Below, piece by piece: positions 59,707 through 64,000 of a stretch of DNA of 64,000 nucleotides. A model generated the notes under the pieces. That model searched no databases, was not told the DNA's origin, and saw only the letters and a list, made by a program, of their open reading frames with translations. The position numbers and the translations under genes are program-made. Location: the sequence record MH494197.1; one strand, written 5' to 3'. Numbering within the stretch: position 1 is the stretch's first letter; each line of letters begins with the position of its first letter.

Positions 59707-60089
59707 TATATATTATACTCTATTATACCATCATCACTTTCACCAGACAACCACTTAATGTAATTTACTTTGTAGAAATTAATCAATGCATAAGTGCTGT
59801 ACTCAATCAACAAGTGATCTCTCAAGAATTCGTCTTGAGCATATCCATCTTCATCCAAATCTGTTGGAATATCAGTTTCTTTGTCTTGAATGTGTAAAGT
59901 TATTGTGTCTTTTGTTATACAAATTTTTATATGATTACAAATAGTAATGATGATTATGCTATATGTTCTATTGAAATATATTGTGAAATCTTCATTAATA
60001 TTATATCTTCGACTTTCTTCATATTTCTGATATGGGTCGAAATGTGATAAATTAACTTTAATTAATGTATTTCTCAACTTACACCTCAA
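59706..60089 (-). CDS. Hypothetical protein, paralogous family
   Basis: DIPTDLDEDGYAQDEFLRD. Confidence 0.55.
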   Translation of the reverse strand: MRCKLRNTLIKVNLSHFDPYQKYEESRRYNINEDFTIYFNRTYSIIIITICNHIKICITKDTITLHIQDKETDIPTDLDEDGYAQDEFLRDHLLIEYSTYALINFYKVNYIKWLSGESDDGIIEYNI

Positions 60090-60466
60090 TCATATAAAGT
60101 AATTATACATTTTATTGTACAATATAAAAGGTCTTTCACATTATCATAAGTAATATCAGATATATCATGAATTAATGATAACTGAAAAATGAAGCTTCGT
60201 CTATCTCTACTGGGATTATAACATCATAGTCTTCGTCAATTTTATGGGTGTAGTATTTTATGTGATCAGCATTCAACACAAGGTTGTATTTTGTATCATC
60301 TTCAATTAATCCGACAAATTGAGATTTTTGATTAATAAAAATCCAATCCCAACACAACGGTTATCTGGATATGGATAGTACCATCTATTAATAACTAGGT
60401 GTTCAGGTAAGTCCATATCATGTGTTGATATTAAAGATTTTACAATTCCCATCCGGAATAATTCAT
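60086..60466 (-). CDS. Hypothetical protein, paralogous family, frameshifted
   Basis: IIPVEIDEASFFQLSLIHD after one restored T. Confidence 0.5.
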
Positions 60467-60482
60467 AATTAAAACTCCATAA

Positions 60483-60512
60483 GAAAAGGGACAGAATAAT
60501 CTCTGTCCCTTT
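60483..60512 (-). terminator. Rho-independent terminator
   Basis: Minus strand AAAGGGACAGA-GATTAT-TCTGTCCCTTT-TCTT. Confidence 0.8.
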
Positions 60513-60520
60513 ATTATATC

Positions 60521-60851
60521 TTACTCTTCGTCTTCAGTCAAGTCTTCTTGAACTGGATGTTCGGGTGGTTACGGCGATGCAATTTGATGCTTTTGTCTTT
60601 ACCTAAGACAGTTTCCATTTTTCAAATGAATCACCAATTGCTTTGTATAAATCTGCATCATCGGCGGTGACAATCTTACCACCTGATGTTAAAGTTACGG
60701 AATATTGATTCTTATGCTCTTTCTTCACATGAACACCGATATAAAGTACTGAAGAATCACTAAATTTCGTTAGTACATTTGCTTCTGCATGAATCGCGTC
60801 ATTGATTGCTGGAGTAATATCAACATTACCTTGGATAACTAAATCTAGCAT
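60521..60851 (-). CDS. hpf: Ribosome hibernation factor HPF/RaiA (S30AE family)-like protein
   Basis: LVIQGNVDITPAINDAI...VLTKF...VTLTSGGKIVTADDADLYKAIGDSFEK matches the HPF pattern (N-EIT-A...A---DMY-AID); repaired tail KMETVLGKDK...EDLTEDEE resembles the acidic RaiA tail. Confidence 0.7.
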
Positions 60852-60865
60852 AATTTACCTACCTT

Positions 60866-61784
60866 TTAGAGTGAGCTTAACAGCAAATCCGCTCTGTTTG
60901 TAACTTGGCGATACCACAAGGAATTCATGATTTCTTTCTTGAACTTCTTAGGGTTATCCATTTTAACACTTTTCCAAAGTTTGTCAAATGTTGCCAACTT
61001 ATCAACGCCCATTGTGTATGACATTTCAAACAGGATACGCTGCTGTTCTTTTGTCAGATTAACTGCATCTTTCTTCTGCATCAATAGTGTAAAGTCCTCG
61101 TAAGTCCTTTTCATATCTTGCATTAAAAGTTTGTTGGCCTGTGCTTTGGTAATCCCGTTTCTGTACTTCATTGCATCAGAATCTTTCTTACCCAAATAAT
61201 GCCCATAACCAATTGTATAATTACCTTTCATGTCCTTATAGGGATGAAATTTAGAATTGTGGAAAGGAACTCCAACTTTCCCACCAAGTAATTTACGTTT
61301 GTTCTTGGACTGAAATTCAATAGAACCTTCAGCTTCTTTGATGTGATCGACAATTTCTGGATCTTTATAATCAAACAGTACAGTCACATCTGGTAACAAT
61401 ACGTTCTTCAAATCCTCTTTGTTGGGATAAAGATACCTGAGAAGTATGAAGAGTTGCATTTAAGTTGATATTCTTCAACAAAATGACATAATCTTCAATC
61501 TGTACATTTTAGGTTTAAATTTCTGTGCAATAGAATAATAACTATCTCCGGTTGAACCGTATAATGTTTCTCGCTGCTTGGAACTGCCTTTGGTACTGAT
61601 ACCTTTAGTAGTTCCTGCTTTTGAATTTACAACTTGTGGTTTTAAATTATGCACCTGACTTTCGTCTAATGATGATGCACGATCACTTTGAGAAAAACCA
61701 TAAAATCCAATCGCAGCGAATAGGGCTGATGAAACTAACACGCCTATGGCAATTTTAGTTTTCAGTGCTTTTTCGCTTTTTCAA
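60866..61784 (-). CDS. Muramidase with N-terminal membrane anchor, LysM domain and GH24 (T4-lysozyme-like) domain
   Basis: TTG start with AAAGGAGG RBS; basic then hydrophobic IAIGVLVSSALFAAIGFYGF; HYTVQ(PG)DSYYSIAQKF LysM; EAEG...YKDMKGNYTIGYGH and SLWYRQVTNRA GH24 motifs. Confidence 0.78.
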
Positions 61785-61900
61785 AACGCCTCCTTTGTTG
61801 GTTGTTAACAATGAGCAATCACAAAGAGGGCAAAGAGGCCATTTGCAAAAGCCTCATTGGACTTTCTACAGTACTCATTTGTTCTTTGGAACATTTAAGT

Positions 61901-61928
61901 AGTATAGCATACTTTTTAGTTATATCAA
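61901..61928 (-). promoter_or_regulatory. Sigma70-like promoter upstream of the lysin leader
   Basis: Minus strand TTGATA-16 nt-TATACT with extended TG. Confidence 0.55.
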
Positions 61929-61951
61929 GACCTATTTACCAAATAACCACA

Positions 61952-62358
61952 TTAATCGTAGTATGTTCTACCAATGGTGATGTGATATTTGAAATATTTA
62001 GATGCCAAACCCAGTTCATTACGAATATGTGCAATGAAATCATCTTCAAACTCTATGATAAAGAATGACCGGTTTCTTATTGTCTTTTACTTCTTCGATG
62101 AAAGGATCGAACTTAATCTTAACTTTCATACCATCGTACTTTTCCAGTACTCTGGATTTGGTGGCACTTCACCACGAACGATACTGACATGTGCTCCCCA
62201 TTGTGGGTCTTTAATATCAATATGTAAGTCAGTTCTGATGAAGTACTGGTAGTATCGAACCAACTGTAATGGAAGTTGCAGTACTAACCAGAAGTCCTTC
62301 TTCTTTTCATAGTGCCACGATCTGGATCATACACCAGAGTTCCTTCCATTTCAATCAT
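61952..62358 (-). CDS. 2H phosphoesterase-family protein (missed by the ORF track)
   Basis: Reconstructed MIEMEGTLVYDP...VRYYQYFI...PQWGAHVSIVRGE...W-KYDG...IRNELGL...YHITIGRTYYD, with two Hx(S/T) motifs about 70 aa apart. Confidence 0.7.
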
Positions 62359-62365
62359 ATTTTAC

Positions 62366-62569
62366 CTATAAATTTACATATATATTTTTATTTTCAATAC
62401 GAACATAAGTTTCTAAAACATCTTTCGGAATTTTATTACTTGTTTTGTACCATGTAGTATTATCTACTAAAACAAAAGTTTCACCTTCAGTTTCACCAAA
62501 TGTACTTAGTGCATAAATGAAGTAGTTTGGTGATGCACTACAATAAACATCAGCATTAATTTCAATCAT
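62366..62569 (-). CDS. Hypothetical protein
   Basis: 67-aa ORF, tightly packed in the operon. Confidence 0.5.
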   Translation of the reverse strand: MIEINADVYCSASPNYFIYALSTFGETEGETFVLVDNTTWYKTSNKIPKDVLETYVRIENKNIYVNL

Positions 62570-62572
62570 ATT

Positions 62573-62704
62573 TTACACCACAATAAAGCTTAATACAACG
62601 AGTGTAATAAACACACCCACAATGGCGGTCATTTCAGGGTTAGCATCGTATGTATAACGGATGCACTTTAGAAAATCTTTACCAAACTTTTTTAGTCCAT
62701 TCAT
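62573..62704 (-). CDS. Small membrane protein (43 aa)
   Basis: MNGLKKFGKDFLKCIRYTYDANPEMTAIVGVFITLVVLSFIVV; AAAGGA RBS. Confidence 0.55.
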   Translation of the reverse strand: MNGLKKFGKDFLKCIRYTYDANPEMTAIVGVFITLVVLSFIVV

Positions 62705-62715
62705 ATATTTTCCTT

Positions 62716-63059
62716 TCATTTCTTGTGTAAAGGGTCGGCACTTTCATAATAGATTGTATCATTGTTTCGCTCAATAGTAAAACTCTTTTGACACAACTCT
62801 TCAGCTAAACCCTTAGCATAGTTTAATACATCTCGGTTGAGATATACTTCTTCTTTTGGGAAGCGTGGGTACTGAATAATACGAGCACACATTCCACTTT
62901 CAAGACCACCCGTGTAGATGTATTCACACGGAATCAATTGTACACAAAATCCAAGCTTGAATGCAAACTTTCGTGTGTACTCTCTTGCTGTTTGATATCA
63001 CCAGCAATATGAATATTCCAGTACTGTGTTTCAACTGTACCTTTGTCGATGTATTTCAT
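62716..63059 (-). CDS. Conserved phage hypothetical protein
   Basis: CVQLIPCEYIYTGGLESG...IIQYPRFP motif; N-terminus recovered across a frameshift; extended -10 TGcTATAAT upstream. Confidence 0.65.
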
Positions 63060-63089
63060 ACTCATCTCCAATTATAGCATAAAAATCCT

Positions 63090-63470
63090 ACTTGCCCAAA
63101 TCTTCTATAATTCTTTTATGATATCATTGTTTTCCAGACATAAAGTACTGAAATTTCTACCTGTTTTTCATTGAGTTCATTAATCTCAAGCATAAGATAA
63201 CCATAAGTGATATCTTGAACCCTACTTCGTTTTACCCTTGAGTACAGTCTGATGGGTACAGATACGCGAGTATTCAAAAGAATTCTGATAAATCATAACG
63301 ATATACGGTATTCATTCTTGTAACGTTTACGACTGTACGATTCTAAACACTGTGGAAACGTCTATCAAACATACTACTTCTTAGTTGAAGTATGATTGGA
63401 TCTAACTTATGCGAGAAATACTTTTGATTATTTTATTAAATCTTGTTACATGTCGTTTACGCCATCTCAT
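63090..63470 (-). CDS. Probable hypothetical protein, heavily frameshifted
   Basis: Gap between genes with coding-like fragments starting MRWRKRHVTRFNKII; no clean frame recovered. Confidence 0.3.
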
Positions 63471-63948
63471 AATCAAACCTTAAAAATATAATAGGAAAGT
63501 ATTTTGTTTCCGAATCTGAAATACTGTTACAGTAATCTTTCAATTCATCATGGATAACATTCAAATGAATAGTAGGATAGTTCATAGGTTTCTGTACTGG
63601 GCCAGTGGCATATACGCAATCTGTTCTATCCCAACTTACATATTGGGTTGGGTAATTATCTTTAGTACGTTCTTCAATAATAATATTATATTCTGGTGTA
63701 TTGAATACATACATATCACATTGTGAAATGTACTGAACATTAAAATCACCATCAGTTAGATGGATCATGTTCCCATCGCAATATAAGCATGATGGTTCAG
63801 TGTATCCTAAAATTGAAGATAAAGTTCTGAAGTTTGCTCGGACCCAAATATACCAAATTCGTGTGTAAACAAATATCAATGAAACGTTTGAAGACTTCAG
63901 TTTCGTTATGCATATAGATACCTTAAAAGACCCACATAGTGAGGTCAA
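63457..63948 (-). CDS. Hypothetical protein (start uncertain, may extend beyond the window)
   Basis: 163-aa ORF, Y/I-rich. Confidence 0.45.
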   Translation of the reverse strand: MTSLCGSFKVSICITKLKSSNVSLIFVYTRIWYIWVRANFRTLSSILGYTEPSCLYCDGNMIHLTDGDFNVQYISQCDMYVFNTPEYNIIIEERTKDNYPTQYVSWDRTDCVYATGPVQKPMNYPTIHLNVIHDELKDYCNSISDSETKYFPIIFLRFDYEMA

Positions 63949-64000
63949 ACACTTTTAAACGTTATCATCATCCAAAGCTTCACGGTAAACATAATAAACA

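Follow-up and report, generated by a model that had tools for sequence, protein, structure and literature searches.

In the maturation gene of phage MS2, the Shine-Dalgarno (SD) sequence pairs at equilibrium with an upstream complement, an early hairpin delays this pairing, and only new RNA is translated. In phage T4, a translational gate controls the expression of the lysozyme gene e, and such gates are also found at soc, gene 49 and I-TevI (reviewed in PMC3014915). Here we compare with these systems the 5' leader of an endolysin gene from a RaK2-like jumbo phage. The alignments and structure predictions indicate that this leader is a conserved cis-regulatory element that hides the lysin ribosome-binding site, and it probably holds down or times the production of the cell-lysing enzyme. 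The leader family includes Asteriusvirus, Eneladusvirus, Mimasvirus, the Munch group and the Hallingskeid/EJP2 group, and Alcyoneusvirus probably belongs to it as well.

The window analysed here is a stretch of 64,000 nucleotides from sequence record MH494197.1. The region around the lysin is 100% identical to Escherichia phage CMSTMSU (MH494197), a RaK2-like jumbo coliphage of the genus Asteriusvirus, and other Asteriusvirus jumbo phages (fEgEco12, phAPEC6, PBECO4 and 121Q) are 88-98% identical to it. All genes of the region are encoded on the minus strand, and all features below are on that strand. The endolysin gene (60866-61784) encodes an N-terminal membrane anchor, a LysM domain and a T4-type lysozyme domain; the Pfam matches to LysM and Phage_lysozyme are preceded by an N-terminus that is charged and then hydrophobic. 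Eight single-base homopolymer gaps divide the lysin into three ORFs in the window. At 61776, 61768, 61630, 61628, 61549, 61506, 61435 and 61417, contigs from three public runs have an extra base, and the breaks are therefore taken as faults of the record in a gene that is intact in nature. The relatives have one lysozyme CDS of 927 nt, annotated from the same TTG that was chosen in the window (61784-61782), and together with the Pfam domains this bears out the earlier note's reading of the stretch as the leader of a lysin gene. The lysin start is a non-AUG codon in all clades except RaK2, which has AUG. The authors of the CBB study reported that cloning of the homologous lysin CBB_187 failed and inhibited growth (PMC5259590).

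Several other observations were made on the record and on the neighbouring genes. The CMSTMSU record has many single-base homopolymer gaps, and the gene upstream of the lysin is frameshifted too, so ORF calls anywhere in the window need caution. The same region is present twice in the 386-kb record (MH494197 16677-16977 and 370800-372400), which is consistent with either a long terminal repeat or assembly through a circularly permuted end. The intergenic leader of ~167 nt is flanked by the lysin and by an upstream gene of 411 nt (61952-62358), an intact copy of which from a relative weakly matched the 2H-phosphoesterase family PF22547 (23.4 bits against a cut-off of 27). A ribosome hibernation (HPF) gene of the S30AE family (60603-60851; PF02482, E 2e-8) begins 15 nt after the lysin. 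This pairing of lysin and HPF genes is also found in Eneladus, Mimas and Kaldavass, and in GAP32 and Munch the HPF gene is two genes further on. The recurrence suggests a conserved late operon joining lysis with ribosome shut-down.

All of the motifs that the earlier note had named were found where it had placed them, upstream of the UUG-started endolysin when the minus strand is read. In DNA letters these are the first anti-SD GCCTCTTTG (61839-61831), the second anti-SD GCCCTCTTTGT (61831-61821), the segment GAGGC (61855-61851), the 5' and 3' strands of the noted ON helix, AACAAATGAG (61883-61874) and CTCATTGTT (61815-61807), and the region around the SD, AACAAAGGAGGC (61799-61788). The ribosome-binding site (61782-61799) consists of an A-rich flank AACAA, the SD AAGGAGG (61795-61789) and the UUG start (61784-61782). 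As RNA, the tandem anti-SDs (61821-61839) read GCCUCUUUG (anti-SD1, 61839-61831) and GCCCUCUUUGU (anti-SD2, 61831-61821). The anti-SD2 core CUCUUUGU is invariant in seven Asterius leaders, and A4 and Turkey5 have lost the anti-SD1 UUUG. An A-rich single-stranded loop lies between the anti-SD and the SD (AACAACCAACAAA here, AACAAAAUGU in Mimas and Eneladus).

A single promoter-like site, of the sigma-70 type, is present in the leader at 61928-61901, upstream of both anti-SDs. It has a -35 element TTGATA, a 16-nt spacer and an extended -10 element TGcTATACT (10/12 matches with the TG present), and the predicted start near 61894 agrees with the leader length of ~110 nt that had been proposed. The -10 block TATGCTATA(C/A)TACT is invariant in seven Asterius leaders and its flanks are variable. 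The promoter overlaps an upstream hairpin, Hup (61866-61907), with a 5' arm (61907-61889) that includes the -10 hexamer and a 3' arm (61884-61866) that includes UGAGUA and the UGUAG of the next hairpin, H0. Hup belongs to the minimum-energy fold, and only read-through transcripts from upstream are able to form it. Its RNAalifold consensus from five Asterius haplotypes contains 14 pairs, two of which have compensatory changes. A hairpin precedes H0 in all clades; outside Asterius it is short and of other sequence but sits in the same place. In RaK2/K64-1 and EJP2 a sigma-70-like -10 element overlaps Hup as in Asterius, and the upstream gene of Mimas, Eneladus, Munch and Hallingskeid has its stop codon in or just before the Hup 5' arm.

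Downstream of Hup, H0 (61844-61870) is formed by the 5' strand UGUAGAAAGUC (61870-61860), a loop (61859-61854) and the 3' strand GGCUUUUGCA (61853-61844), which has a bulged G. Three further helices compete within the same stretch. Hairpin (a) (61835-61855) pairs the SD mimic GAGGCU (61855-61850) with GGCCUC (61840-61835); it captures the core of anti-SD1 and has the GGCU in common with the H0 3' strand. In the Asterius RNAalifold consensus its six pairs are invariant, and the insertions in relatives fall in its loop. The helix P1 is formed by the proximal 5' strand CAAUGAG (61853-61859), which lies in the H0 loop, and CUCAUUG (61815-61809). The distal 5' strand of the ON helix, AACAAAUGAGUA (61872-61883), belongs to the dominant predicted fold of promoter-initiated RNA in CMSTMSU and fEgEco12, and P1 and the ON helix use a common 3' strand, UGCUCAUUGUU (61807-61817).

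The complementarity of both anti-SDs to the SD, as described in the earlier note, is reproduced by the folding programs. In the minimum-energy fold that RNAfold gives for the leader, the SD is paired with anti-SD1, and the RNAalifold consensus of the Asterius genus pairs anti-SD2 with the SD. The same consensus pairs GAGGCU with GGCCUC, in agreement with the pairing of GAGGC and the first anti-SD that had been noted. When the upstream 95 nt were dinucleotide-shuffled, 7.8% of the shuffles gave an equal or better anti-SD duplex (p about 0.08) and 69% had two or more anti-SD sites. The trimmed leader (61873 to 61767) has a fold z of -0.51; an earlier z of -3.28 was due mainly to the upstream hairpin overlapping the -10 hexamer. 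The predicted cost of opening the ribosome-binding site is 6-7 kcal/mol, compared to a median of 5.0 and a 90th percentile of 8.9 for 104 other genes of the close relative fEgEco12. In the window alone, the anti-SD complementarity and the fold stability are within chance and the occlusion of the ribosome-binding site is unremarkable for the genome. The signal that exceeds chance comes from the related phages and not from the window sequence itself. The opening cost of the lysin of CBB, a Mimasvirus, ranks 6 of 90 genes, and that of Mimas is 12-16 kcal/mol, a cost at which active relief seems necessary, whether by a kinetic window, RNA processing or a factor (all conjectural). The leaders of the non-Asterius clades are unusually stable (fold z -3.4 to -6.5). 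For 15 of the 21 leaders the SD has a predicted unpaired probability of 0.00-0.21; higher values are seen in the Munch group, Turkey5 and RaK2.

In every clade a segment downstream of H0 is complementary to the SD flank of its own leader and changes along with that flank. The Asterius anti-SD GCC(C/A)UCUUUGU faces the SD region ACAAAGGAGGC, and the corresponding partners are CUCCUGUUGC and GCAAAUAGGAG in Hallingskeid/EJP2, CCUUAU(UA)UGCAU and AUGUAUAU(U)AAGG in Eneladus, and UCCUUAUUACGCA and UGUGUAAUAAGGA in Mimas. The Munch group pairs its start codon rather than the SD: the anti-SD CUCACUGA faces UCAGUGAG, which contains the GUG start. RaK2 has two such segments, UUCUGUAU and CCUUUU, with the partners AUACAGAA and AAAAGG. 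When the leader and SD segments are swapped between clades, the duplexes are mostly block-diagonal by clade. The consensus fold of Mimas and Eneladus contains H0 and the anti-SD:SD helix with two compensatory pairs (RNAalifold).

A covariance model (R1) of H0 and the anti-SD:SD helix was built from nine Mimas and Eneladus leaders only. R1 matched the full length of the lysin leaders in Hallingskeid/EJP2 (63-66 bits), Asterius (31-39 bits) and Munch (35-37 bits). The window matched at 61768-61873 with 31.5 bits (E about 1e-4), with no Asterius sequence in the model, and RaK2 reached only 20 bits (E 0.06-0.15), which is not significant. Searches of whole genomes with R1 gave a single significant match per genome, at the lysin leader. 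In the R1 alignment 96% of the cells pair and 11 of the 22 pairs show double changes, compared to 5.3 +/- 1.4 in shuffles (11 was reached in 0 of 500) and 1-4 with slid partners; the alignment used for this count was fitted to the structure and its sequences amount to only about six independent clades. Ten of the 11 double-changed pairs are in the anti-SD:SD helices. The OFF helices are invariant in Asterius, and there is therefore no covariation within that genus. The covariation in related phages for which the earlier note had proposed to look thus lies above the shuffles, and sequestration by the lysin leader of the SD, as the note proposed, or of the start codon is conserved and covaries across six clades. 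As a separate observation, the nine Eneladus and Mimas leaders have identical nucleotides from the SD through at least nine codons (27 aligned columns); by eye the identity extends ~45 nt into the lysin CDS, synonymous sites included, and the middle of the leader diverges. RNAalifold places the UUG start of these phages inside a 6-bp hairpin, UUGUAU/AUACAA, and the identical CDS start may be a second layer of RNA constraint.

The comparison of regions upstream of the lysin covered 17 RaK2-like phages with annotation, plus several contigs from IMG/VR and metagenomes, where scans contributed only a few new variants. These regions are unalignable apart from one conserved block, and the lysins themselves share only 48-61% identity. 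All leaders have in common UGUAGRAAGUCC, a few A's and then GRCUUU(G)UGCA, which are the two strands of H0. The strands pair as UGUA:UGCA and AAAGUC:GRCUUU, separated by a G/G mismatch or, in Asterius, by the bulged G. H0 is located 84-102 nt upstream of the lysin start and is nearly invariant in the lysin leaders of six RaK2-like clades. As an 11-bp hairpin it is predicted by RNAfold in the Mimas, Eneladus and Munch leaders and is recovered by RNAalifold. In 21 sequences 96.5% of the H0 cells are paired and the U-G wobbles are conserved, which points to an RNA of the lysin strand rather than a DNA palindrome. The H0 core AAAGUCC/GGCUUU (61860-61867 with 61848-61853) presumably resembles the conserved GAAAGUCC strand of helix P4 in bacterial RNase P RNA, a likeness that may be coincidence.

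The exact H0 12-mer is unique in the window, and four of the five relatives searched have a single copy of it in their genomes. The RaK2 genome has no exact 12-mer and only near-matches with one mismatch, and near-matches elsewhere are at the control level. On these counts H0 was rejected as a general promoter or a repeated motif. A search of 5,426 E. coli genomes for H0-like sequence gave no match. A four-strand model in which the formation of H0 decides the exposure of the SD was found to be thermodynamically unsupported, as enforcing H0, or blocking or removing its 5' strand, barely alters the predicted SD pairing. For a hairpin that is invariant and yet has hardly any predicted effect on SD pairing, recognition by a factor is the natural reading. 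H0 is probably a recognition site for a factor, and it is the candidate site if a protein is involved; a protein factor is a possible trigger. We propose, tentatively and as a rather doubtful extension, that H0, perhaps with Hup, is the operator of a lysis-timing switch at which a phage or host RNA-binding factor or a small ligand decides whether the SD mimic captures the anti-SD. If this were true, the translation of the endolysin would be released at a set point of infection in jumbo phages that are without a defined holin-based clock. The leader of RaK2/K64-1 (Alcyoneusvirus) has a diverged H0 (UUGUUAAGUC/GGCUUGAUGC) and an AUG start, and it contains two exclusive hairpins, with GGCUUGAU...AUCAAGCC followed by UUUUAUU resembling a terminator. 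The Alcyoneusvirus lysin leader may work differently from those of the other clades.

An SD-like segment that can pair with the anti-SD lies beside or overlaps the H0 3' strand in every clade. This SD mimic is GAGGC in Asterius and Munch, GCA(A)AUAAGG in Mimas and Eneladus, and GCAAACGGAG in Hallingskeid. In the minimum-energy folds of growing chains, hairpins of the P1/P2 type hold the anti-SD before the SD is made in five of seven representatives, and the folds later flip to anti-SD:SD once the SD has been transcribed; the kinetic window suggested by this behavior is derived from minimum-energy folds of growing chains and not from kinetics. P1 is the minimum-energy fold of the growing Asterius chain ahead of SD synthesis. 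Among five haplotypes it changes from A:U to G:C at two positions, and one position is mismatched in two of the five. Helices that compete for the anti-SD, as had been proposed, do exist, and one of them, P1, shows some compensatory changes. The particular ON helix that had been noted (61883-61874 with 61815-61807) is confined to the CMSTMSU subgroup and, with alterations, Turkey5, and is absent from phAPEC6/121Q, A4 and UE-S1. The idea of mutually exclusive ON and OFF folds holds in that competitors exist, but the OFF fold wins at equilibrium in nearly all relatives.

The 5' end of the RNA is predicted to influence this balance in one subgroup. In CMSTMSU and fEgEco12 the ON helix would cost 0.3-0.7 kcal/mol in promoter RNA, modelled as starting about 7 nt after the -10 element at a predicted start site, versus 4.7-6.2 kcal/mol in read-through RNA. 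The SD is predicted to be unpaired with a probability of 0.40 in promoter RNA versus 0.04-0.21 in read-through RNA. This 5'-end effect is a modelled one, with energy differences close to the model error and a start site that is itself predicted. It differs in design from that of T4 and is predicted for the CMSTMSU subgroup only; no such effect is predicted in the phAPEC6, A4 and UE-S1 groups, which makes it a lineage-specific possibility. In Mimas, Eneladus and Munch neither removal of the H0 5' strand nor a block of the 5' end frees the SD, and no ON state is predicted at equilibrium. Coupling to the upstream gene was also considered and rejected, as blocking the first 15-26 nt (a ribosome at the stop codon) leaves the SD paired in Mimas, Eneladus and Munch. 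A search of the fEgEco12 genome for a trans-acting complement of the anti-SD pair returned only the leader itself. In a wastewater metatranscriptome, one contig spans the lysin and leader as far as 61881 and the following one starts at 61914, which brackets the predicted promoter; this gap is only a hint because the depth is 3-8 and contigs cannot show RNA ends. One raw RNA run that was screened contained no reads of the phage, and the contigs from RNA libraries show neither starts nor strand.

The earlier note had listed several signals to which the leader might respond. A response to temperature was not borne out, as the SD accessibility computed for 10 leaders is flat from 20 to 45 °C. A ligand-responsive switch found no support in Rfam 15, the covariance models of which gave no match in 60000-64000 at E up to 1 and, at six clade loci with E up to 5, only two chance matches, both in coding DNA. 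The second promoter within the inhibitory helix on which timing as in T4 would depend is absent. RaK2-like phages reportedly use ATAAATA as a late motif along with a sigma factor resembling gp55 (PMC5259590); neither ATAAATA nor TATAAATA with up to one mismatch was found between the anti-SD and the SD in 17 leaders. A scan for intrinsic terminators in 60500-62600 gave 0 terminator-like sites. A leader peptide was rejected as well: the 12-codon ORF at 61856-61818 is not conserved in frame (in Turkey5 the AUG is GUG and there is a 1-nt insertion, UE-S1 has a 1-nt insertion, and A4 retains 8 codons) and is absent in most other clades.

We favor, with a confidence slightly better than even, the explanation that this is the endolysin 5' leader of a conserved RaK2-like family in which the SD is hidden by an anti-SD, competing helices give an early translatable conformer, and translation is throttled. 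In the stable fold, the SD region (the start codon in the Munch group) would be paired with the upstream pyrimidine-rich anti-SD, and this pairing together with the weak UUG start would throttle the translation of an enzyme that is toxic if made early or in excess. The SD mimic (GAGGC here) and the enclosing helix onto CUCAUUG would compete for the anti-SD, and as these competitors are predicted to form first during synthesis, they may give a translatable conformer that is later refolded or displaced. In the CMSTMSU subgroup, folding predicts that Hup forms in read-through RNA, which would leave the anti-SD free and the leader OFF. RNA started at the promoter would be without the Hup 5' arm, the enclosing helix would form, and about half of the RNA would be ON. 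H0 overlaps the strands of the competitors and is probably recognised by a factor.

A simpler explanation is that the leader is a constitutive damper and not a switch, with a fixed low yield of lysin per transcript, timing set elsewhere (e.g. by membrane depolarisation), and the competing helices as intermediates or accidents. In almost all clades the OFF fold is indeed predicted at equilibrium however the 5' part is altered, no temperature response and no Rfam aptamer were found, and with two anti-SDs the Asterius SD stays paired in the presence of either H0 or hairpin (a). A plain damper, however, leaves unexplained the near-invariance of the H0 strands and loop in clades with lysins of ~50% identity, the recurrence of the SD mimic in three sequence forms, and the compensatory changes in P1. 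Additionally, the 12-16 kcal/mol in Mimas would nearly abolish translation of a presumably necessary lysis enzyme unless relieved. We regard the damper as an alternative to be taken seriously, though an improbable one. The invariance at the sequence level of so small a hairpin, which suggests protein recognition, could also mean that the main role of H0 (with Hup) lies in RNA processing or stability, as a site where a nuclease or protein determines the 5' end or half-life of the lysin-HPF mRNA, with SD pairing either secondary or relieved by cleavage in the A-rich loop. That loop does separate the anti-SD from the SD as a single strand, and the contig boundaries at 61881 and 61914 may be added as a very weak sign. 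There is no evidence of cleavage, however, the contigs cannot reveal RNA ends, and covariation is found in the anti-SD:SD helices and not in H0 alone; this explanation appears unlikely.

Two further readings are given little weight. In one, transcription would be attenuated, with hairpin (a) followed by UUUGCCCUCUUUGUG acting as a leaky terminator and H0 as the anti-terminator, and with the GGCUUGAU...AUCAAGCC stem and UUUUAUU as the RaK2 equivalent. H0 and hairpin (a) are mutually exclusive through the shared GGCU, and the RaK2 stem is followed by UUUUAUU. The terminator scan, however, found nothing in 60500-62600, the stem here has 6 pairs with a 9-nt loop and an interrupted U tract, and Mimas and Eneladus are without an equivalent U tract, which makes attenuation highly improbable. 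The other reading is that of chance complementarity without function, in a CU-rich intergenic region beside a strong SD. The single-sequence values (p about 0.08, z = -0.5) would allow it, but a model with one significant match per genome, always at the lysin leader and in clades outside the model, double changes above both controls, and a core far more conserved than its flanks together leave it scarcely credible.

The presence of a conserved leader in at least five genera points to the post-transcriptional control of a membrane-anchored and apparently toxic lysis enzyme. The leader is a candidate RNA family absent from Rfam, with a newly noticed invariant hairpin, H0. It may account for poor expression of the lysin from its native upstream sequence, and it is a part to remove or keep when such phages or lysins are engineered in laboratory strains.

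The leader follows the strand logic of translational riboswitch platforms: besides the SD and the anti-SD it has an SD mimic, and this mimic overlaps the conserved H0 in its 3' strand. Unlike riboswitches, it has no Rfam match and no ligand is indicated, H0 with its 11 bp is small for a metabolite pocket, and for most clades H0 is not predicted to influence the equilibrium. The leader resembles that of the MS2 maturation gene in having an upstream complement of the SD and an earlier-formed hairpin that would postpone the pairing; MS2 differs in having an RNA genome, and the kinetic window here comes from growing-chain folds only. The window has the H0 and the anti-SD helix that characterise the RaK2-like lysin leaders, and in predicted folds its SD is sequestered by an upstream strand. 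As in T4 gene e, the SD or start of a phage lysozyme is thus held in a helix with an upstream strand and the read-through RNA would be poorly translated, and in the CMSTMSU subgroup the promoter lies inside the 5' arm of a hairpin, with two RNA species that are predicted to fold differently. In T4, the late promoter TATAAATA is located within the 5' strand of the inhibitory helix, so the late RNA is made without the anti-SD. Here the promoter is outside that strand; it is sigma-70-like and upstream of both anti-SDs, and its predicted effect would be passed on from one competing helix to the next (Hup, then the enclosing helix, then the anti-SD). The invariant H0 and the tandem anti-SDs have no counterpart in T4. 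The leader of ~110 nt would therefore add a differently built jumbo-phage example to the T4 gene e paradigm.
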